This document shows, piece after piece, positions 4,652 to 63,507 of a stretch of DNA of 64,000 nucleotides. A program made the translations under genes and the position numbers. Location of the stretch: the sequence record OR513085.1, one strand, 5' to 3'. Below the pieces are notes generated by a model. It ran no database searches. It was not told the origin of the DNA and saw only the letters and a program-made list of their open reading frames with translations. The first letter of the stretch is position 1; each line of letters starts with the position of its first letter.

Positions 4652-6121
4652 ATGGCAAAACGTAAAAATGTAGCTGAAGCATCTGAATTTGAACTTACTG
4701 AGTTTAACGACCAGATCAACATCACTACTTTACTTAACACTGATTATAAAGCATACGCTGGATATACTGTTTTTAACAGAGCAATTCCTTCATTAGCTGA
4801 CGGATTCAAAACTGTACAGCGAAAGATTATGTACACTGCCTTAGGCGAACTTAAAGGTAACAAACCAATTAAAGTTGCTGCTTTAGGAGGATTCGTAATG
4901 GCAAAATCACATTATGCTCACGGTGATGCTTCATTAGAATCTGCTATCGTAACAATGGGCCAAGGATTCAAACAATCATTGCCTTATTTCTTACCTGACA
5001 GTGACTTTGGTGAAATTTATACACCTCAAGCAGGTGCAGCAAGGTATATTTCAATGTACAAATCAGATGTTTTCGATTTGTTGATGAAAGATTCCAACCA
5101 ACTTATTAAGCAATACGCAGAAGGCGATGAAATCGAACCTACTCACTACTTACCAATTATCCCAACTGTACTTATCAATTCAACTGAAGGTATGGCAGTA
5201 GGATATTCATCAAACATTATCAACAAAAATCCACTAGGACTAATCGATGCTTGCATCGACTATGTCAAGACTGGTAAGCTTGATGATTCGTTAGAGTTGA
5301 TTCCTTACTTCCAAGGAGCTATAGGACGTTACGTTAACTACACAAACCATGTAGGGGACTCAAGGTTTGAACATTACGGACTTTGGGAACAAGTTAATCC
5401 TAAAATGCTTAGAGTTACAGGACTTCCTGCAGGAACTACTTTAGAAAAGTTTGAAGAGCATTTAAATTCATTGATTGATGTAGGGCAAATTTTTGACTGG
5501 GTTAACCGTTCAGAAAACAACAAAATCAATTATGAAGTTCACTTTGACAAAAACGTATTAGCAGACATCATCAAAAAAGGAACAGTACTTAACGTTCTAA
5601 AATTATTCACAAGACTTCAAGTTGATAACTTGACAATGCTGGATATCGATGGAAAAGTTAAACGTTTTGATAACGTTGCCCAAGTAATTCGTAGATTTAT
5701 TGACTGGAGAATGCCTTATGTCGAAACTCGCAGACAACTTAAAATCGACGAAATCAACAAAAAGATAAAGGCTGCTAACGATAAACTTAAATTCATTGAG
5801 TTAGTTCAGGCAGGTAAAATTGATGTTAAGTCTTTCGTTTCAAGAGCCGATGCTGCAGAGAAACTTAGCAAATTCGACCTACCTGTTGAAATGGTCGATA
5901 TCAAAATTTATTCGATATCTAAGGAGGAGGTTGACAAACTAAAGAAAAGTATTGTGGATTTACTTAAAGAGCTTAGCTATTATGAGAAATTAACTGCAAA
6001 GAAAATGTATCTGACAGATTTAACTGACTTACTTAAAGCAGTTGAAGCTAAAGGTTATCAAAGAGACGAATGCGAATACATTGTAGATAAAGTATGGCAA
6101 GCACAACTGGCTCAACAATAA
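4652..6121 (+). CDS. gp52: DNA topoisomerase II medium subunit (T4 gp52/GyrA-like)
   Basis: RAIPSLADGFKTVQRK, HYAHGDAS, catalytic AARY, IIPTVLIN..GMAVGY. Confidence 0.95.
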   Translation: MAKRKNVAEASEFELTEFNDQINITTLLNTDYKAYAGYTVFNRAIPSLADGFKTVQRKIMYTALGELKGNKPIKVAALGGFVMAKSHYAHGDASLESAIVTMGQGFKQSLPYFLPDSDFGEIYTPQAGAARYISMYKSDVFDLLMKDSNQLIKQYAEGDEIEPTHYLPIIPTVLINSTEGMAVGYSSNIINKNPLGLIDACIDYVKTGKLDDSLELIPYFQGAIGRYVNYTNHVGDSRFEHYGLWEQVNPKMLRVTGLPAGTTLEKFEEHLNSLIDVGQIFDWVNRSENNKINYEVHFDKNVLADIIKKGTVLNVLKLFTRLQVDNLTMLDIDGKVKRFDNVAQVIRRFIDWRMPYVETRRQLKIDEINKKIKAANDKLKFIELVQAGKIDVKSFVSRADAAEKLSKFDLPVEMVDIKIYSISKEEVDKLKKSIVDLLKELSYYEKLTAKKMYLTDLTDLLKAVEAKGYQRDECEYIVDKVWQAQLAQQ

Positions 6122-6162
6122 CAATAAAGTTCCAAAAAGGAGTATATGCTTTCCAGCGTGAA

Positions 6163-6348
6163 ATGACGCTGGAAATGTATCTCCACTTACTAAAGGAAAA
6201 TCCAAAGCCGCTGATCGACGACATTCAAAAGATCAGAGCCGATATTGACAGAATGCCAGAATCACACTCTGGAAACTGCAGATGTTCATGTTGCTATGCA
6301 CATCATAAATACGACTTACCACCGACAGTAGACCCTATAATTATTTAA
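6163..6348 (+). CDS. Small Cys/His-rich hypothetical protein
   Basis: Likely start 6163 inside ORF 6094..6348; CRCSCCYAHH. Confidence 0.45.
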   Translation: MTLEMYLHLLKENPKPLIDDIQKIRADIDRMPESHSGNCRCSCCYAHHKYDLPPTVDPIII

Positions 6349-6353
6349 AACTT

Positions 6354-6671
6354 ATGAAATTACCACAAAACGTAGATTCTGAATCTACGGAAGCTAAACT
6401 AGCTGAAAAGCTTGAAGCAGTAAAAACTCAAGCCAAAATTTTGCTATTACACACTGCTTTACTATTCATGCATGTTACGATAATCTGGCTAATCTATTGC
6501 TGGATAGCACCAAAAATTGTACAGTTAAGTCTGCCGGAATTTTCCTGGACTGAATTTGCATTTGCGCTTATTCTTGGTAGGTTCTTACATACAGGACTTA
6601 CATTAAAAATTGATGCAAAGAAAGCCTACGACAGATACAAAGAGCGTGAAGCTAAACGAAAGAATGAGTAA
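6354..6671 (+). CDS. Hypothetical membrane protein (2 TM)
   Basis: Two hydrophobic segments, basic C-terminus. Confidence 0.6.
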   Translation: MKLPQNVDSESTEAKLAEKLEAVKTQAKILLLHTALLFMHVTIIWLIYCWIAPKIVQLSLPEFSWTEFAFALILGRFLHTGLTLKIDAKKAYDRYKEREAKRKNE

Positions 6672-6765
6672 GTTACAACTTGGCTAGATTAAAAAGTAAG
6701 CTAAGCTTGCGCATTTACTACTAAATGCGTATAATAAAAACATAAAAATAAAACAACACACGACA

Positions 6766-7086
6766 ATGCAAAATACACAACAAGAAGATAACGTAGTTGA
6801 CGTACAAATCGACAGTAAAGAATTACTTAACGAACTTGAACAACTTACTGGACAAAGAATCGTTTCTGAGGAATACCAAAAGGACCAGGCTCAGCTTTTA
6901 GAATACATGGAGCAAAACAAATTGTATGGCAGAAGCACAATGAACAGGCAGCAAAAACGTAATCACTTCTTGAAAGCTGATCTTGGCGGAGATAAGTCTA
7001 ACCAGCAAAGAGCTCAGGCTAAAAAAGTTGCCAAAGTAAAAGCTAAATCCAAAGCTGCTAAGAAAGCTAGGAAAAAGCAAAGATAA
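6766..7086 (+). CDS. Hypothetical protein with Lys/Ala-rich basic tail
   Basis: MNRQQKR motif; KAKSKAAKKARKKQR tail. Confidence 0.6.
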   Translation: MQNTQQEDNVVDVQIDSKELLNELEQLTGQRIVSEEYQKDQAQLLEYMEQNKLYGRSTMNRQQKRNHFLKADLGGDKSNQQRAQAKKVAKVKAKSKAAKKARKKQR

Positions 7087-7117
7087 CGACCATGATTTTT
7101 GATTTTTAATATTATTG

Positions 7118-7155
7118 ATTTTATCCCAAGTGTCTTCGATGCTTGGGATTTTTGC
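7118..7155 (+). terminator. Rho-independent terminator
   Basis: atcccaagtgtc-ttc-gatgcttgggat + T run. Confidence 0.8.
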
Positions 7156-7214
7156 GTTTACTATAATATGCGAAACATTTATACATACACTAACTAATAT
7201 TTTACAGCAAAATT

Positions 7215-7535
7215 ATGGCAGATAAAACATTTGAATGGTCAGACCCGGCAACTAAATTGCCTAAAGTAGGCGAAGCTATTATTGTAGAATTGATACCTCA
7301 ACTAGGCTATCCTGCAGACTACAAAATAAGATTTGAAGCACAATATGTTAATGTATTTTCAGATCATGCTACGTTCAATCATAGCAATTACTTTTTCAAT
7401 ACTAACCAAACTGACGAGGAAAAGACTTGGCCAGTAGATCAAGTTAGACAATGGTCGCCTTGGTTTGAAGGTTGGGAGAACGCAGTAGAATCCGACTTAG
7501 CGCCAGCTAAAGCAAAACGTACTAATAAAAAATAA
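7215..7535 (+). CDS. DUF551-like standalone protein
   Basis: EWSDPATKLPKVGE..IIV; DQVRQWSPWFEGW. Confidence 0.6.
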   Translation: MADKTFEWSDPATKLPKVGEAIIVELIPQLGYPADYKIRFEAQYVNVFSDHATFNHSNYFFNTNQTDEEKTWPVDQVRQWSPWFEGWENAVESDLAPAKAKRTNKK

Positions 7536-7541
7536 CAACAT

Positions 7542-7868
7542 ATGGCAACTATAACTTGGAAGCAAGTTTCCGCAGAACAACCGGAACCTAACACAAAAAT
7601 ACTAATAAAAGCTAAATTTAGTCAATACGAATCTTGGAATGACGTTAAGATTGGCAATAACGAATGTCAGTCTGTAGTAGCTAAAGATTTTGAAGAGCCG
7701 CTAGAAGCAGTACTATCTGGAGAATACAATGACAATGCGACACTAACTAATTTTACTCCACTCTGGAAGTTATTCAAAAGTAGACATGGAGTTTCTGCAT
7801 TTGAATTGGACCAAATTACTGAATGGGCTGAGTGGTTCCCTGGATGGGATTTAGAGGACCAAGCTTAA
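7542..7868 (+). CDS. DUF551-like standalone protein
   Basis: TWKQVSAEQPEPNTKILIKA; GVSAFELDQITEWAEWF. Confidence 0.6.
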   Translation: MATITWKQVSAEQPEPNTKILIKAKFSQYESWNDVKIGNNECQSVVAKDFEEPLEAVLSGEYNDNATLTNFTPLWKLFKSRHGVSAFELDQITEWAEWFPGWDLEDQA

Positions 7869-30915: not shown

Positions 30916-30931
30916 AAAAATCAAAAACAAA

Positions 30932-31393
30932 ATGAAAATCAAAATCGCATCGGCAAATTTCAAAAAATATAACGAACTAAATGGAATGCAGAAACTTGAT
31001 AGTTTCTTAACTGACCATGAAATTTACGAAGGTGAAGAAATGACAGTTTATCATCATACAGTAGATGACTGGAGAAGGCTTCCTGTAGTAGACAATGGCA
31101 GAAATGTTGGTGAAATTAAAGTTTCTTGTGATGGTGCATATGCTGCATTCCTTGGAAATGATGGTTCCGTAAAATTAGCAAAATCTCCTTACCAACTTTA
31201 TGACAGATGGCTTAAGGCCGGTTCAAACCGAATAATGCTTGCAAACTATAAGCCTTTCGAAGGTAGAACTGACTTCTATGGAGCTCCTTGCGAAGAACCT
31301 GCTTGGATTGCAGAAGGTTATTGGGAACTTAAAGGTAGAGGAAAGCAAATTGTTATTACAAAATTCCAAGAAACTGAAGCTATTTTCGCATAA
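30932..31393 (+). CDS. Hypothetical protein
   Basis: First gene after the promoter. Confidence 0.6.
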   Translation: MKIKIASANFKKYNELNGMQKLDSFLTDHEIYEGEEMTVYHHTVDDWRRLPVVDNGRNVGEIKVSCDGAYAAFLGNDGSVKLAKSPYQLYDRWLKAGSNRIMLANYKPFEGRTDFYGAPCEEPAWIAEGYWELKGRGKQIVITKFQETEAIFA

Positions 31394-41151: not shown

Positions 41152-43338
41152 ATGTCACAGCCACTTTACACCCTGTTTAAGCGTACAGGGGCTTATACTC
41201 TGTTCAAGGACGAGTCTGAAATGGAGAGAACTAACGTAGGTGATACTGCACTTCATGTTATTGTCGGACAATCCCGATTCGGAAATGCACCAATCAACAC
41301 TTTAGTTAGACTTCAGGACACATCGGAATTATTCAATACTTTCGGTACGAGAGATCGTTACATGGAACGTAGAGGTAATTACTTAATTCCATACGCTAAC
41401 ATTTTACTTTCTCAAGGGCCAGTATTCGTACTTAACCTTAGAAAATTTGACGACACTAAGCATAAAGTAGACAACATCTCTGTTAAGCCTGCTAAAGATT
41501 CTAAGTTCGTTTTTGATTCCAACAAACAAGTTCCAATTCAGTCTATCTACGACAGAACGGGATTTTGGAAAGTTGACAAGGAATTAATTCAGGAAAACAT
41601 CAAGGACGAAGCATTGCTAATGTTCTCAACATTCAATTCAAAGTCTGGTTCAATCATTATCACTAAGGCAGATATGTCCTTAACTGAATTTGGTGGCGGA
41701 AAAACTGTGGCTGACTATAATGCTCAGCATCCAAGAAATCCAATCGAAAACTTACCTGGCGAATTCTTACTTGCAGATTTATTCTACAAAGTTGATGTTT
41801 TTGCATCTAGGTTAGCTAACGACTTAGCAACTAACTTTAACCCGGCATTAGCTGCATTCTTAGCAGTACCAACTTCTCCAACTGGAGGTAATGGACTTTT
41901 AGGAACTGGTACAGATGGTGTCCTTGGCACCGGTACAGATGGTGCATTAGCCGCTAACGACCCAGGAACTTTAGCTGCTTCTGAACCATTCACTAACGTT
42001 TTAGGAACTACTGCCGCTGAACAAGCTGCTAAGCTTGCAGGACTTATTGCTTTACGTTCTTCTAACTACTTACAATCTTACACTGGATGTATCATTCCTG
42101 ACGTAGTTTCTACTATGGGTGACAAAGTTTCTATTGCTGACCAGTTCAACAATGATTCTAAAATTCACGGTATGGTTGCTTCGTTTAACGAAGAATTGCT
42201 AGAAGAATGGGCGTTGGATATCGACAATGGCGATCCTACAGCAATCAAAGCATATTTTGATGGACTTGCACCTACTACGGGTGGAGGTAACCCAGTAGCT
42301 CCTCAAGTTATTGACCTTAAAGGTGCAGATACTACAGATGACCAGTTTATCGACGGTACTGCTGCTAAGCAAAATGAAATGCTTGACTTATTGACTACTA
42401 GAGGTCTTAAATCAGGTCTTACTGCATACAAGAAAAACGACTACGCATATATCCTGGATTCATTCAAGTCTTACTTACAGGCTAATGACAAATGGCAGAT
42501 TGCTAAGTTAGCTTTAGATACTAAGCGTATTAGCTACTTATATTCTACGCCATTCATGAAGGACTTTACTAGAGAAAAAACTTATCAGGATGACAATGGA
42601 GTATTTGATGCTAAGTTTATTCCACAAGGAGGTAACCCTTCCGTACAGGATAAAGTTTTGTATTCAATGCCAGGTGATGGATTTGGTGATATTGCAACAT
42701 TCCCATTCGCAGGTGGATTTATCTACGATGATGGAGGAAAACAAATTGCAATTCCAGGTTCAATTGCAGGAGCTATAGCATACGGTGCTAAGCATATTTC
42801 TGCAATCCGTAAGCCTTACTCAATTGTAAATGGACCAATCAATGGATTAGTAAATATGCCTTACGTTACTGACGTAGACTACGAATTTACTGACTATGAC
42901 TTGGATTGGCTAGAACCATTTGGATGGAACTGTAACTTGAAGTCTGGAACTGTTTTTGAAATCAGAAATGATGCTACGGCTAAAAACATCGTTAAGTCTT
43001 CACTTTCTTACGCTTCAAACTATGAGCTAATTACTTATATTGCTAGAGAAGGTAGAAAAGTACTTGAACCACTTATTGGTGAACGTAACAACCCAGTAAC
43101 TAGACTTAGAGCTAAGCAAGGAGTTGATGCCATCTGTAACAGACTTAGAGCTGAAGGAGTTATTGAAACTTACACTAACGTTTGTGACTTAACTAACAAC
43201 ACTGTACAGTTGAGAAAGCAAGGATTCCTAGTACTTGACACGGTTATTGTAACTGCTGATGGTATTAGAATTGCAGTTCATCAAATTGATGTTAAGCTTA
43301 CTAACGACGTAGCTAACATTGTTTTAGAGGACGCATAA
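41152..43338 (+). CDS. gp18: Tail sheath protein
   Basis: VGQSRFG..NTLV, NTFG; C-terminal VCDLTNNT..LVLD; followed by a tube gene. Confidence 0.85.
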   Translation: MSQPLYTLFKRTGAYTLFKDESEMERTNVGDTALHVIVGQSRFGNAPINTLVRLQDTSELFNTFGTRDRYMERRGNYLIPYANILLSQGPVFVLNLRKFDDTKHKVDNISVKPAKDSKFVFDSNKQVPIQSIYDRTGFWKVDKELIQENIKDEALLMFSTFNSKSGSIIITKADMSLTEFGGGKTVADYNAQHPRNPIENLPGEFLLADLFYKVDVFASRLANDLATNFNPALAAFLAVPTSPTGGNGLLGTGTDGVLGTGTDGALAANDPGTLAASEPFTNVLGTTAAEQAAKLAGLIALRSSNYLQSYTGCIIPDVVSTMGDKVSIADQFNNDSKIHGMVASFNEELLEEWALDIDNGDPTAIKAYFDGLAPTTGGGNPVAPQVIDLKGADTTDDQFIDGTAAKQNEMLDLLTTRGLKSGLTAYKKNDYAYILDSFKSYLQANDKWQIAKLALDTKRISYLYSTPFMKDFTREKTYQDDNGVFDAKFIPQGGNPSVQDKVLYSMPGDGFGDIATFPFAGGFIYDDGGKQIAIPGSIAGAIAYGAKHISAIRKPYSIVNGPINGLVNMPYVTDVDYEFTDYDLDWLEPFGWNCNLKSGTVFEIRNDATAKNIVKSSLSYASNYELITYIAREGRKVLEPLIGERNNPVTRLRAKQGVDAICNRLRAEGVIETYTNVCDLTNNTVQLRKQGFLVLDTVIVTADGIRIAVHQIDVKLTNDVANIVLEDA

Positions 43339-45127: not shown

Positions 45128-46045
45128 ATGACAAACGAAGACAACAAAGAGTTAAGCCATTTTGAAGCACTTAAGGCTAAAGATGGAATTAACCAACCTG
45201 CGTCTGAGCCTGAGCTTACTATAGCGTCAGCACCTCAAATAGGACATGGTAGGGTCGATAAAAGCTTAATGCCTTTCGGTGGCAAGCAATATCCTGAAAA
45301 TATGGAGTTCGATGTTAGGTTGGCAGGAGTTAATGAAATTAGACATTGGTCTACAGTTTCGGATAACATGCACCCAACAAAACTTTACACTTATTTTAAC
45401 GATATTGTTCAAAAATGTGTTAAAGTTCATGGCGGAACTTGGCAAGACATTAAAGAGGCTGACAGACTTTGGTTTGTAATGTACATTCACGAACTAACGT
45501 TTATTGAGGCTGAACGTCCTGCAGTACTTAACGCTAGATGTAAGAATACTTCATGTGGCGAGGAATTTAAGGCTAAGCTTTACAAGGAAATTATTCAGTT
45601 CGATACACCTGATGAAGCTGTACACAAATACATTAACAAAGCTACCGGGTCATTCCACTTGCAAACAAAATCATATGGCGAAGTTATCCTAACTATTCCG
45701 ACGCTTAAAACCGGAGTAGCTTTGATGGCTTACTACAACAAGCAAAAAGAGGATTGGATTGAAAAGAACACAACGTTCCTGGATATAGCAACTTACATGA
45801 TTCAGCCGCATCAAACACCTACAGAAGGATTGTTTAATGCACTTTATGCTGACTATATGTCATGGGATTCTAAAAAATTATCGACAATGATTGGCCTAGT
45901 TGCCAAAGTTAAGTTGGTACCACGTCAAACATTTAAAGTTAAGTGCCCTAAATGTGGTAGCGAGACAGACCAGGCGCTTGACCTGGAAGGTGGGATTAGG
46001 TCTATTTTTCTACCAGTTTCAGATATCGCTGACGAACTTATTTAA
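45128..46045 (+). CDS. Baseplate hub assembly chaperone (T4 gp26-like)
   Basis: CKN..CG and CPKCG zinc knuckles; upstream of the tape measure; TATAAATA at about 45095. Confidence 0.7.
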   Translation: MTNEDNKELSHFEALKAKDGINQPASEPELTIASAPQIGHGRVDKSLMPFGGKQYPENMEFDVRLAGVNEIRHWSTVSDNMHPTKLYTYFNDIVQKCVKVHGGTWQDIKEADRLWFVMYIHELTFIEAERPAVLNARCKNTSCGEEFKAKLYKEIIQFDTPDEAVHKYINKATGSFHLQTKSYGEVILTIPTLKTGVALMAYYNKQKEDWIEKNTTFLDIATYMIQPHQTPTEGLFNALYADYMSWDSKKLSTMIGLVAKVKLVPRQTFKVKCPKCGSETDQALDLEGGIRSIFLPVSDIADELI

Positions 46046-46277
46046 TAATGTCGTTGACATTTGTGAACATGTAGGATTCCAACCATCAGAAATTTATGCA
46101 ATGCCTTATTCTGAATACCAGCACCACGTATACTACATCTTGGAAAAGGGTGAAAAACGAGCAGGACAGCAGGATGGTCAAGGTACCCAGCAAAACGCTA
46201 TGATGCGTAACCAACAAAGACAACTGTCAAAAGCTCAATCTAACTTTAAGATGCCAAAATCTCCAAAGTTTAAGTAA
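46011..46277 (+). CDS. gp51-like chaperone C-terminal segment, probably reached by +1 frameshift
   Basis: FQISLTNLF..GFQPSEIYAMPYSEY; no in-frame ATG before MPYSEY; overlaps the end of the upstream gene. Confidence 0.55.
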   Translation, partial: YQFQISLTNLFNNVVDICEHVGFQPSEIYAMPYSEYQHHVYYILEKGEKRAGQQDGQGTQQNAMMRNQQRQLSKAQSNFKMPKSPKFK

Positions 46278-46311
46278 AGCACACACTTTATACTCTTGAA
46301 TCATACCATTT

Positions 46312-46345
46312 GACCGTAGCATTAATTTGTTACGGTCTTTTTGCG
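46312..46345 (+). terminator. Rho-independent terminator
   Basis: gaccgtagca..tgttacggtc + T run. Confidence 0.75.
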
Positions 46346-46399
46346 TTTAAAAATTACAAACTACTAGCATTTTGTGTACATAACTAAAATTATAACAAT

Positions 46400-49300
46400 A
46401 TGGCAGGTGGTTTTAATACCGATAACTCAGCAGTAAATACTGCGATACTGTCGTCAATTTTTGATCTTTCAAAGGCACAAAAAGTCTTAGCTGCTGCAGT
46501 TTTTGGATTTACGAAAACATTTAACCTCGTAGATACTGACGAATACAAAGGCATAGACAATGACACTAAGGAGACTATGAAGCAACTCAACGAGACTACA
46601 ACATCGTTGAATGCTAAGTTAGCCGAATTAGAAAAGTCTAACAACAAAAAAGATCGGGATGAAAACGACACTATGCGCAACATGGCTACAGTTGCTACAG
46701 TTTTCGGCTCAAACAAAGAACAATCCAAACGTTTCAACGATACAATTAAGGAGTTCGACAAATTCGTCAAAAACACTGCACAAAATAAACAAGCTGCTGC
46801 GGTCTTTGAAGGCTTGGCGTCGTTCACTGAAAAATTCAGTAACGTCGACTTTATGGCTGCAGGTAAAGGCCTTGGCGCAATTGCAGTAGGCTTAACTGCC
46901 ATAGGGCTTTCACTTTATGCATTGTCATACATGGTTACGCCTAGCGGATTCTTGTATGCTGCAGCAATTATGGGCGGTACTATTGCTTTTGCTAAGCAAA
47001 TGAAAAATGTTGATACTAACCAGCTTGATATGGCTGCAGCATCAATGTCAAAAATTGCAACATCATTACTACTAACATCTACAGCATTAGCAGTTATGTC
47101 ATTGCTACCAAAAGGCTCAGTAGCTTCAGCGTTAGTAACGTACGTAGCGTTAGCAACTACAATTGCATTTACTACCATGATTCTAAACAAATCAGGTAAC
47201 CGAATTCGTGGTAGAAATAATGGTGCAGCTGAAGGCCCTGCAATTATTGCAGCGTCTTTAGGAATTTTAGCACTTTCAATATGGGCTTGGAACAAATTGA
47301 TACCTGACCCTTCAGTAGCGTTAGTACCTATTTTAGTCATTACAGGATTTGCGCTAGCAATGGCCGTAGTTAATGCTATACCTGGAAGAGGTGGTTTAGA
47401 AGGTGCGGCTAAAGGTTTACTTTTTGCATCAATGTCAATTGTAGTTTTGGCATTAGCTGTAGTAGTTTGGGAGGAACTTAAACCTGCTCAAATTGCCAAG
47501 CCTATCCTAGCTATTGTAGGCTTAGCTTTAGGTTTAGCTTTAATGGACAGAGTTTCTAAAGGCGGCGATATTAAACGTTCAGCAATTGGTTTGGTTATAG
47601 CTTCGGCAGCAGTAGGTGCTTTAGCTATAGCAATTAAAATGTGGGATATACTTGGCATTGATGAGGACATGATAGCTTTACCGGGCTTAGCAATTCTAGG
47701 ACTAATGGGTAGTTTAATGCTAATGTCAAGATTTGGCGGTACTCAAATGATTGCTGCTGCAGGCGCTATTATAATGACTTCTGTAGCAATAGGACTTATG
47801 GCATTTGCTATAATGATGTGGAAGCCTATTGACACTGACTTAATGACTCAAGTAGGCATATTCATGGTTGGCATTGGCGCAGGTATAGCATTACTTGGAC
47901 AAGTAGGACCTCAGGCGTTAATGGCTGCAGGTGCTTTACTTATAACAGGATTCGCAATGAAACAGATGGGTGAAGGCTTAGCATTAATGGGTAAAGCTTC
48001 TGTAGATCAACTTGTTCAATCAGGATTGTTTATTGCAGGCTTAGGCGCAGTGTTAGCTTTGTTAGGCTTAGCTCCTTGGGCTATTCTAGGCGCAGTTTCG
48101 TTAGGCTTAGGAGGTTTAGCATTAGTTAAAGTTGGCGAAGGTATGCAGGCTATGCAAAAAGCAGGCTTATCAAATCGTCAAGTAGATGGAATGATTTATG
48201 CAGTAGAATCGTTAGCACAGTTATTCAAAGATGTCGGCGGACCTATAGACACTCCTAGAATTTTACTAGGAGCTGCTACAGTAGGTTCAATTGGTATGGC
48301 TACTTTGGCTGTAGCTAACACGCTTAAAGTACTTTCACAAACTAGGCTTACTGAGGAACAAATGAAATCTACAGCCAATGGAATTGGATTTTTCATTCAA
48401 TCCATGGTCGATGTTTTCAAAGATTATCAAGGTGATTTTGACGATGTTGAGGATGGCATTGAAAGCTTGGCTGACCTAGGCTCACTTATCACAGGTATTG
48501 CCGATGGTATGGTTAAAATGGGACAGCTTACATTCACCGAATATGCTGTACGTGATGGTAAAATTGTTCCAGTTTCTACAAGATCATTCAAACCATCAGA
48601 CTTTAAACGAGTAGGTGAAGGGATGGGCGTACTAATTTCTGCACTAACTGAACCTTTAGCTAATGTAGGTAAGACTGCAAACTGGTTCTCTTCAGGTGAC
48701 GTTGGCCGAGGAATCAAGGCTGTTAAAGACCTTGGTAACTTAGTCAAAGGTATTGCTGATGGCGTAGCAGGTATGGCAGAACTACAATTCACTGAATATG
48801 ATGTAGTTGATGGTAAGTTGGTCCCTGTTAAAACTAGAAAGTTTGGTCCTAATGACTTCAAGAAAGTAGGCAACAATATTTCAGCTTTACTTGGTGCTAT
48901 AACATCACCATTGGCTGCAATTGGTAAAGGTTCTTCTTGGCTTATCGACTCTGATGTTGAAAAAGGAATTAAAGCTTTAAAAGACTTAGCAACTAACGTT
49001 ATTAACCCACTATCCAGAATGACTGACTTTATTACAAAGTCTAATATGACGGTAGATCGTTCTAAGGAGTTCTCATTAGCATTCCAGATTTTAGTAGGCG
49101 GAATTGGTTCGGCTTTGGATAGAATTGGTGGCCAGGATTACGAAGATGCTAACAAAAACATAGGCGAATTTGTTGGCCATGTTGAAGCTTTAGTTTCCAA
49201 AGTTGACCCATTGGAACGTATGCATCAAAATTTCAAAGGAATTGCAGGCTCACTTTCTCAAATTAACAACGAGCTATCCGGTGACAAACTTAAAAAAGTA

Positions 49301-62320: not shown

Positions 62321-62343
62321 AATAACATAAAAATAAAAATCAT

Positions 62344-63507
62344 ATGTCAACAGAAAACTTCTTATCGTACGTTTATTCAAAATCTATCAACGAGCACCAG
62401 GACAAAATTAGGACAGGTATGTCCGACCACGAGATAAGAGTTAATTCATGCCTTAAATTGGCGTTATCAGTAGCCAAACAATACCATGCACAATCAGGCA
62501 CTAAAATGTCTTTAGAAGACGTAACACAATATGCATTTGAAGGAGTTTGTATAGCGTCTCAACGTTACAATGACCCTAACGTTAAGTTCTCAGCTTATGC
62601 TTACCACTGGATTAAAAAATGTGTCTTAGATGCAATTAACATAACTGCAAGACCTCTAGCGGTTTCAAATGTTGAGGGCTTTGGCCGAGTTACTGACGAA
62701 ATCAAATTCCTTTCAAAAGATGCTAAATTTTCCAATGGCTCTGACGACATGGAAGGTGACAAAAATCCAATTTACAATTCGTTAACTGCGGATAGTTTGA
62801 CAGAAGACTTGGCTGACTATGATGTTGCAGTTAACTCAACTAGGTCTGCTATCAAAGATATGCTTTCATCACTTAATGCACATGAACTTAAAGTTACTTG
62901 CTGCTATTTTGGATTGGCACCATTTGAAGCACCAAGTTCAATTCAGCAAGTTGCAGCACAATTCAGATATTCAAAACCTATTGTAGAGCTTATCATCAAC
63001 AACTCCATCATTAACATGAAAAATTATGCAGAAGCTCATGGTATGGACTTACAGGAATTGCTAACTGAAGCTAAAACGTTAAGCAATGTAAAGACTAAGG
63101 AGTCTATTGCAGATGACTACATGGACAGAGACTTCTATAAAAAGTCAGAAATTGATGACAACTTAAAAGCTATACAAGATGCTTCAGGACTAACTGACGA
63201 GCAGATGCAAATGGCAATTAACTTTGATCTTGCTGATGGTTATCACTTCATAGCTAAACGCGAAATTGCAGGATTGACTTTGTATCAACGACATACTATT
63301 ATCAAAAGGTTTGGTAATGGCCGAGTAACTTTGGCTTGCGTACACTCAATATTTGATAAGAACGGCAATATGAGAAAAGAGGAAACTTTTACGCATATCA
63401 ACAAAAGCGTACCAATTTGGGAGTTCTCGAAATATTGCAAAGAACACAGAATTAACCAAATGCATTCACCAATATTCCCTGCACCAAATGGGCAACTTAT
63501 CTACTAG
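62344..63507 (+). CDS. Sigma-70-family RNA polymerase sigma factor with C-terminal extension
   Basis: Region 2: LKLALSVAKQY..LEDVTQYAFEG..KFSAYAYHWIK; region 4: LNAHELKV..YFGL..SIQQVA. Confidence 0.8.
   Translation: MSTENFLSYVYSKSINEHQDKIRTGMSDHEIRVNSCLKLALSVAKQYHAQSGTKMSLEDVTQYAFEGVCIASQRYNDPNVKFSAYAYHWIKKCVLDAINITARPLAVSNVEGFGRVTDEIKFLSKDAKFSNGSDDMEGDKNPIYNSLTADSLTEDLADYDVAVNSTRSAIKDMLSSLNAHELKVTCCYFGLAPFEAPSSIQQVAAQFRYSKPIVELIINNSIINMKNYAEAHGMDLQELLTEAKTLSNVKTKESIADDYMDRDFYKKSEIDDNLKAIQDASGLTDEQMQMAINFDLADGYHFIAKREIAGLTLYQRHTIIKRFGNGRVTLACVHSIFDKNGNMRKEETFTHINKSVPIWEFSKYCKEHRINQMHSPIFPAPNGQLIY

Follow-up and report, generated by a model that had tools for sequence, protein, structure and literature searches.

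The question raised by this locus is whether two adjacent genes of Chryseobacterium phage MA9V-2, MA9V2_059 and MA9V2_060, each deposited in GenBank as encoding a 'hypothetical protein', are read as two genes or as one. MA9V-2 is a lytic myovirus infecting C. indologenes MA9, with a genome of 218,539 bp (OR513085.1), and the stretch analysed here, referred to as the window, comprises 64,000 nucleotides (nt) that are identical to this record and share its coordinates. MA9V2_059 is an open reading frame (ORF) of 305 codons resembling gene 26 of phage T4, and it lies upstream of a gene for a tape-measure-like protein. A reading of the sequence alone had proposed that a programmed +1 frameshift on TTT CTA, near the end of this ORF, joins it to the overlapping +1 frame. 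Comparative evidence supports a programmed shift into that frame at or next to TTT_C, and with a probability of about 0.78 MA9V2_059 and MA9V2_060 form a single recoding cassette, in which tRNA-Phe would slip by +1 on UUU_C. This evidence, drawn from comparison with relatives, lies in the overlap of the two frames, its conservation, a switch in the frame under selection, the family to which the 305-amino-acid (aa) protein belongs, and the homology of the extension that the second frame encodes.

The arrangement of the frames is as the sequence-only reading described it (coordinates in Table 1). Frame 0 ends ...GGIRSIFLPVSDIADELI, with its stop codon at 46043, and ATT (46004), TTT (46007, encoding Phe294) and CTA (46010) are all in this frame. 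Open from 45900 to 46277, the +1 frame reads YQFQISLTNLFNNVVDICEHVGFQPSEIYAMPYSEY... from 46011, and joining 294 codons of frame 0 to the 88 of the extension gives a fusion of 382 aa. The MPYSEY encoded from ATG 46101 is preceded by no ATG, as had been claimed, nor by any GTG or TTG, in the +1 frame as far upstream as 45993; the same frame does have possible starts further upstream of the slip site, namely GTG 45990, TTG 45978, GTG 45954 and TTG 45900. Within the overlap, frame 0 encodes LPVSDIADELI followed by the stop, and the +1 frame encodes YQFQISLTNLF, with which the first helix of the extension begins.

Conservation of the two-frame overlap and of the TTTC site in homologues had been put forward as the means of checking the proposal. 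The overlap was scored where the +1 frame stayed open over at least 50 nt 5' of the frame-0 stop and at least 157 nt 3' of it, and 66 of 67 distinct family loci qualified. Of the controls, 2 of 84 frame tests from the window and 4 of 179 further ORFs of the related loci did so, such that the +1 overlap in the family far exceeds chance. The two window control ORFs in question (30931-31390 and 62343-63504, plus strand) could simply reflect ordinary downstream genes that overlap them. The +1 frame is open in five metagenomic relatives with 43–58% protein identity, in phages PTm1, PAU and pT24, in four huge-phage metagenome-assembled genomes (MAGs), and in the Lak phages once TAG is read as Gln. 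At least 303 relatives were found in IMG/VR, where the overlap is kept in 78 of 79 usable loci. The open span in relatives reaches 50–146 nt 5' of the stop and about 157–400 nt 3' of it. Phage MA9V-1 has a shift site identical to that of MA9V-2, and between the frame-0 stop and ATG 46101 it differs by just two substitutions, both synonymous third-position changes in the +1 frame.

That an assembly indel split the frames is excluded by MA9V-1, an independent record in which the site is identical, together with the family-wide conservation. The sole family locus with an early frame-0 stop is L021 (IMGVR_UViG_3300035698_010989), in which the conserved ...ESKVFSLFQIS segment is found further downstream in another frame; the gene may be truly disrupted here, or the assembly may be in error. 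No related loci were obtained from a single-protein search of viral contigs, nor from a search of metagenome contigs with one family alignment. The 'programmed frameshift tail chaperone' of Phage G (PMC12484599) has no detectable relation to this family and is absent from the tblastn results.

The frame under selection is indicated by codon periodicity, which follows frame 0 as far as the conserved Phe codon and the +1 frame from exactly that codon on. Positional entropy was scored by codon position in 46 distinct distant loci aligned at the slip motif, and was highest at frame-0 third positions up to the codon preceding the Phe codon. From the Phe codon on, these positions are essentially invariant and variation lies at frame-0 first positions, equivalent to +1 third positions, continuing past the stop. 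Variable sites in seven MA9V-clade sequences numbered 9/7/17 by frame-0 position in the 20 codons 5' of the slip site, 2/4/8 by +1 codon position in the overlap, and 14/9/18 by +1 position after the frame-0 stop. Just 5' of the site, frame 0 retains Arg (AGG/CGG) and Ser (TCT/TCA/AGC) and the residues of the +1 frame vary freely; just 3' of it, fourfold-degenerate frame-0 sites (CCA, TCA) are frozen and G/A changes occur on +1 third positions. The frame-0 tail is also conserved, as ...S-D-I-x-D/G-E-L-L/V/I before the stop, with an ELL end common to T4 gp26; the 35-nt overlap is hence truly dual-coding, and both termini matter.

The site itself is of a documented type. UUU_C had been named in the sequence-only reading as a recognised +1 context, which agrees with the literature: UUU_Ynn is especially +1-prone in bacteria and is the type of the YopN-TyeA and influenza PA-X sites (Atkins et al. 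2016, PMC5009743). The six MA9V-clade sites are ATT_TTT_C (twice), TTT_TTT_C, CTG_TTT_C and ATG_TTT_T (twice), and at every one of them tRNA-Phe could move +1 from UUU to UUY with perfect pairing. Within window ORFs of at least 150 aa, in-frame TTT_C is depleted twofold, at 4.8% compared with 9.6% for other NNT codons (p 1.4e-4), and TTT_T is likewise low. Such depletion would fit with +1-prone UUU_Y sites being avoided, and is weak support given that CTT_C, GAT_C and TCT_C show it to a similar degree. The codons CTC, CCC and CGG hardly occur in the same ORFs (4, 1 and 2 among 16,613 codons).

From these comparisons we infer a slip, with its direction, efficiency and function, as follows. Most ribosomes would translate frame 0 to its stop and release the 305-aa gp26-like protein, a putative hub and tape-measure assembly chaperone. 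In some ribosomes, tRNA-Phe on UUU 46007-46009 in the P site would slip by +1 and re-pair with UUC at 46008-10, with C46010 in effect skipped and UAC (46011-13) becoming the next codon, and these ribosomes would then read the +1 frame to 46277. The 382-aa product would have the same folded domain, with an 11-residue acidic tail (...SDIADELI) swapped for an 88-residue extension, in which a linker joins a helical domain resembling the C-terminus of gp51 to a basic FKxPK motif. By analogy with gpG/gpGT of phage lambda and gp26/gp51 of T4, the short and long forms may cooperate in fixed proportion in hub, tape-measure and tube assembly, and both would be expected to be absent from the virion. That a +1-frame fusion protein is made is judged highly probable; a +1 slip on UUU_C specifically, as opposed to -2, is held somewhat less strongly than the fusion itself.

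Several observations weigh against this reading, and the first of these concern the start codons available to the second frame. GTG 45990 is present in all six MA9V-clade loci and could start an independent protein of 95 aa; PAU has AAGGAG, a good Shine-Dalgarno sequence, together with an ATG just past the frame-0 stop; and in phages PhiW-14 and KVP40 the gp26 stop is overlapped by the ATG of the homologous small ORF (TGATG, TAATG), which indicates that the extension domain can exist as a separate polypeptide. The second ORF could on these grounds be a separate gene, read from GTG 45990 or another upstream +1 start and yielding a free protein of about 95 aa that acts in trans. GTG 45990, however, is explained by the conserved frame-0 Gly-Gly codons (GGT GGG), of which it is a by-product, and it is absent outside the clade. 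The five +1 codons leading from it to the slip site are unconserved (L/A/H/Q, F/C), whereas frame 0 is there under clear selection. About 20 distinct loci lack any ATG, GTG or TTG over the stretch from the upstream +1 stop to the conserved FSLFQIS segment, and in several loci the first candidate start lies 49–82 nt 3' of the frame-0 stop. The switch in selection, moreover, occurs at the Phe codon and not at any start. No independent start for the second ORF is conserved among the relatives, a point on which the sequence-only reading had made its proposal depend, and a separate gene is considered unlikely.

The same observations bear on the deposited annotation, according to which the sole product of the second frame would be the 58-aa protein from ATG 46101, the open frame upstream being untranslated. 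The ATG is kept within the MA9V clade; it is, however, replaced by Leu in PTm1 and PAU, and no ribosome-binding context was found upstream of it. The conserved domain starts 30 residues upstream of this Met, and residues in that region are conserved family-wide, including a QPSE motif that is retained despite switches between Ser codon families (TCA/TCT/AGC/AGT). A confident fold of the extension requires its residues 7–30, and homology to the KVP40 ORF begins at extension residue 4. The annotated start is therefore very improbable as the origin of the only product.

A second matter weighing against the +1 slip is its direction. Most distant relatives carry HUU_UUC, at which the perfect slip is -2 rather than +1: the form HTT_TTC is found at 53 of the 67 distinct family loci, where tRNA-Phe can move perfectly from UUC to UUU, and where +1 would require near-cognate slippage of tRNA-Ile or tRNA-Leu. 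As -2 and +1 arrive in the same frame, and as the five-T run of MA9V-2 also gives perfect -2 re-pairing, the shift in MA9V-2 could be real and yet be a -2 slip from UUU 46007-9 to UUU 46005-7, giving a protein of 383 aa with an extra Phe (...SIFFYQ...). Such re-pairing is impossible, however, at three of the six MA9V-clade sites, namely L014 (CTG_TTT_C), L018 and L020 (both ATG_TTT_T), leaving +1 from UUU to UUY as the only slip possible at all six. A -2 slip in both clades would also produce fusion proteins differing by one residue, whereas +1 in the MA9V clade with -2 elsewhere gives fusions that align without a gap, since the MA9V clade has one extra frame-0 codon. A -2 slip in MA9V-2 is judged marginally less credible than a separate gene.

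The slip mechanism consequently does not appear uniform across the family. Five family loci have UUU_R, and the Lak phages (L010/L011, ~5760-5800) have no TTTTC motif, reading ATA TTC AAC at this point, with frame 0 ending GAT TTT TAA T; this stop-adjacent UUU_U context may permit an RF2-like +1 shift at TTT_TAA. The Lak extension also has an insert of about 40 residues, and requires TAG to be read as Gln to stay open. Across sites as different as HTT_TTC, UUU_R and the Lak TTT_TAA, the device is conserved and the slip chemistry probably is not.

The third matter counting against a programmed +1 slip is the stimulator. No significant RNA structure was found on folding 45995-46110 (z -0.22), and no conserved structure was found either, RNAalifold predicting zero pairs on 40 main-clade sequences. 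A rare A-site codon was rejected as a stimulator, as CUA occurs at 14.9 per 1000 codons. No tRNA genes were found in the window. Slippage of RNA polymerase on the T run, by which a minority of mRNAs would carry a frame-joining indel, was also considered given the five T at 46005-46009. Productive transcriptional slippage normally requires T runs of about 7–9 or more, and the overlap is also found where the run comprises only three or four T, as in L014 (CTG_TTT_C) and the main clade (HTT_TTC). Polymerase slippage is the least plausible of the alternatives, with hardly any weight given to it.

The protein encoded by frame 0 is, on the basis of sequence profiles and predicted fold, a distant member of PF12322 (T4_baseplate), the family of the T4 hub-assembly chaperones gp26 and gp51, and the 'gp26-like' label of the sequence-only reading holds. 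MA9V2_059 matches phrog_36717 over its full length. Four of seven close relatives (43–58% identity) match PF12322, with a best E of 8.5e-8, and MA9V-2 itself scores 13.6 bits, which is below the cut-off of 24.5, over profile positions 21–208 of 219. All 30 of 30 neighbours in the ESM Atlas carry PF12322, and some are named 'baseplate hub assembly chaperone'. The AlphaFold2 (AF2) model of the 305-aa protein (predicted local distance difference test score, pLDDT, 85.6; predicted template modelling score 0.79) matches models in BFVD named 'baseplate hub assembly protein, T4-like' and 'T4 gp51-like', with E of 1e-9 to 1e-5 and a probability of 1.0; searches of solved structures returned no meaningful match. 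The paired Cys residues of a zinc ribbon (C138, C143, C273, C276) are invariant. A C-terminal signature, G-[IL]-[KR]-x-[IL]-F ... E-L-L, is present, and T4 gp26 ends KCPECG...RGLKEFFELL. In the model Phe294 is the last ordered residue, with 295–305 disordered, and the two alternative C-termini would thus diverge exactly at the end of the fold.

The label 'tail-assembly chaperone' had also been applied, and it stands by position and analogy but not by homology to the gpG and gpE families. The 305-aa protein has no hit in Pfam, PHROG or NCBIfam to the tail-assembly-chaperone (TAC) families (gpG, P2 gpE and those named Phage_TAC_), and leads to Phage_tail_T and GpE in the ESM Atlas are sub-threshold. 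As there is no homology to a TAC family, the protein is regarded as a functional analogue of the G/GT chaperones and not as a member.

Three parts make up the extension of MA9V-2: a conserved helical domain with the motif QPSEIYAMPYSEY, a linker of low complexity, and FKMPK..PKFK at the C-terminus. Across the family, the +1 product has the motif QPSE-x3-(M/L)P-x-YE, fixed 12 codons 3' of the frame-0 stop, and ends in a low-complexity linker followed by one to four copies of hydrophobic-K-x-P-K. AF2 gives the extension a pLDDT of >90 over residues 10–50, with helix 1 beginning inside the overlap; a search of the viral fold library returned nothing significant (best E 0.12). The extension is, by profile alignment, homologous to the small ORF following gene 26 in KVP40 (hhalign probability 90%, E 1.7e-6), with residues 4–53, numbered from the slip site, colinear with residues 5–54, numbered from the Met of that ORF. 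The ORF following gp26 in PhiW-14, numbered likewise from its Met, aligns with an E of 5e-4. Homology to the C-terminus of gp51 (Gp51_C) is likely: the KVP40 ORF matches the gp51 family weakly (E 0.012, gp51 residues 211–240), and the ESM Atlas gives a lead from the extension to Gp51_C with a score of 0.86. Direct profile comparison of the extension with the T4 gp51 C-terminus (PF28602) was not significant (E 0.14), and neither was PhiW-14 gp29 against gp51 (E 0.28).

Phage PaBG (L107, 877-1839, minus strand) encodes a PF12322 protein of 321 aa that ends ...EFGMPFDMNMPAKLF...GFKPLA, and its gene directly precedes a Gly/Arg-rich tape-measure-like ORF. This protein may represent the extension fused in frame; the hhalign comparison gave an E of 0.17, which is not significant.

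The gene order in MA9V-2 is sheath, tube-like gene, two small ORFs, MA9V2_059/060 and the tape-measure-like gene (Table 1). Relatives show the same order, with an ORF of 1074–1081 aa 3' of their cassette, and in L014, L018 and L020 the 188-aa tube-like gene sits directly between the sheath and gp26-like genes. The terminator-like hairpin is in an unusual position for an operon of G/GT and tape-measure genes, and in the alignment with MA9V-1 one stem pair is altered on both sides, from A-T to G-C. MA9V-1 (L002, OR050627.1) also has a 2.1-kb glycoside hydrolase family 16 gene (5765-7846) between its chaperone cassette and tape-measure gene. This insertion starts just past the hairpin, and the gene is absent from MA9V-2 (window 46278-46400). 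The MA9V-2 phage paper mentions neither a frameshift nor a chaperone.

Table 1. Features of the MA9V-2 tail locus around the proposed recoding cassette, in window coordinates.
Feature	Coordinates	Strand	Basis or remark
Tail sheath gene	41152-43338	+	phrog_34521, E 1e-72
Putative tail tube gene, 188 aa	43405-43971	+	Tube identity from position alone
MA9V2_059, frame-0 gp26-like gene, 305 aa	45128-46045	+	Short product
Proposed shift site AUU UUU CUA	46004-46012	+	Sequence, comparison with relatives
Dual-coding overlap, frame 0 plus +1	46011-46045	+	
+1-frame extension, 88 codons and stop	46011-46277	+	
MA9V2_060, GenBank ORF from ATG, 58 aa	46101-46277	+	Corresponds to the 3' two-thirds of the extension
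Terminator-like hairpin and T run	46312-46345	+	Between chaperone cassette and tape-measure gene
MA9V2_061, tape-measure-like protein, 1082 aa	46400-49648	+	phrog_4372 'tail length tape measure protein', E 9.6e-7

The cassette can be compared with the conserved tail-assembly-chaperone frameshift of long-tailed phages (Levin 1993; Xu, Hendrix & Duda 2004, reviewed in PMC5009743). As with gpG/gpGT of lambda, there are two overlapping ORFs after the tube gene and directly before the tape-measure gene (PMC5009743), the second ORF is without a start of its own, and both products would share an N-terminal chaperone domain. The G/GT type is further characterised by a fixed ratio of the two products, with the short domain binding the tape measure and the extension the tube. 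It differs from lambda in that the predicted shift is +1 (or -2) and not -1, with no X_XXY_YYZ heptamer, in that the first ORF is of 305 aa, as opposed to ~100–150 aa, and is a zinc-ribbon protein of PF12322, and in the terminator-like hairpin that stands between cassette and tape-measure gene.

The sequence-only reading had placed a G/GT-like recoding event in a T4-type gp26/gp51 locus, and this stands in large part. Leiman et al. 2010 (PMC3004832, Table 2) name T4 gp26 among the hub assembly chaperones. Both T4 gp26 and gp51 match PF12322 over its whole length and all gp51 homologues combine PF12322 with PF28602 Gp51_C, so that T4 has a short and a long paralogue of one domain. The MA9V-2 protein resembles them in domain family, fold, zinc ribbon, the motif G-[IL]-K-x-F and the ...ELL end, with its short form similar in architecture to gp26, and the long form similar to gp51 in having PF12322 and a C-terminal helical domain. 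The T4 genes 26 and 51 are, however, separate, divergently transcribed paralogues and not cassette halves, whereas MA9V-2 appears to have one gene with recoding; T4 also differs in making gp26' from an internal start.

KVP40 (L113, near record 186780) and PhiW-14 (L110, 4230-4260) are closer in arrangement. In both, a canonical -1 heptamer (GAT TTT TTC) stands two codons ahead of the gp26 stop, with the extension in the -1 frame. Given the heptamer together with the overlapping ATG, their gp51-like ORF could arise from a -1 shift, from stop-start coupling or from the two combined. The slip position, at the Phe codon or codons after G-I-x-D/S, and the downstream domain are homologous to those of MA9V-2. 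The difference is that these phages would use -1 on U_UUU_UUC, whereas in the MA9V/PAU/PTm1/Lak clade the extension lies in the +1 frame, mostly without a start, and is overlapped by a frame-0 tail of 8–12 codons. Phage phiRSL1 has TTT_CTG with a +1 ORF that has its own ATG.

With regard to the slip, the MA9V-2 site shares with the UUU_Y sites of Yersinia YopN-TyeA and influenza PA-X (UCC_UUU_CGU; PMC5009743) an in-frame UUU followed by a pyrimidine, a P-site tRNA-Phe that gains a G:C pair on moving +1, and the feature that a stop codon or RNA structure is not obligatory; it differs from them in that its A-site codon, CUA, is common and not rare, and in its context of phage tail morphogenesis. 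A +1 shift in a tail-morphogenesis gene is likewise reported for Listeria phage PSA and the archaeal myovirus HSTV-2, the latter being cited as a likely +1 G-T case (PMC5009743). In PSA, by contrast, no chaperone gene is involved: it is the major tail and capsid genes that shift, on CCC ahead of a stop or pseudoknot. The protein families of both viruses are unlike that of MA9V-2. No paper linking gp26 or gp51 to frameshifting, or describing these cassettes, was found in the literature searched. What the comparisons support is a predicted tail-chaperone frameshift borne by a gp26/gp51-family protein, in the +1 direction, in a large clade of jumbo phages and megaphages.

A broader reading may be offered tentatively, at somewhat less than even odds. 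A single homologous recoding point, the Phe codon closing the gp26-type fold, may have been kept over a very broad range of myoviruses, with the route to a gp51-like extension changing repeatedly. The routes would be -1 on U_UUU_UUC in KVP40 and PhiW-14, +1 on UUU_Y in MA9V, and -2 on HUU_UUC in PAU, PTm1 and most huge-phage MAGs, in addition to a possible +1 on UUU_UAA in Lak phages, stop-start coupling, and full gene duplication in T4 (26, 51). If this is true, T4-type and jumbo phages would be no exception to the tail-chaperone frameshift rule, and P-site tRNA-Phe would be the common slipping agent in three directions.

The cassette has been overlooked in the records of several jumbo phages and hundreds of relatives, with at least 303 IMG/VR contigs carrying it. 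Two unrelated 'hypothetical proteins' are recorded at this position in MA9V-1, MA9V-2, PTm1, PTm5, pT24 and PAU, and in the Lak phages and other huge-phage MAGs it is unannotated. The family offers a natural series of homologous +1, -2 and -1 sites at one Phe codon, with no RNA stimulator apparent and in Bacteroidota hosts, where Shine-Dalgarno-led translation is largely lacking, and would be a good system for asking what determines the direction and efficiency of slipping. More generally, the finding ties the T4 hub chaperones gp26 and gp51 to the logic of lambda G/GT, in which a short and a long form are made of one chaperone domain, and would extend that logic to jumbo phages and megaphages.

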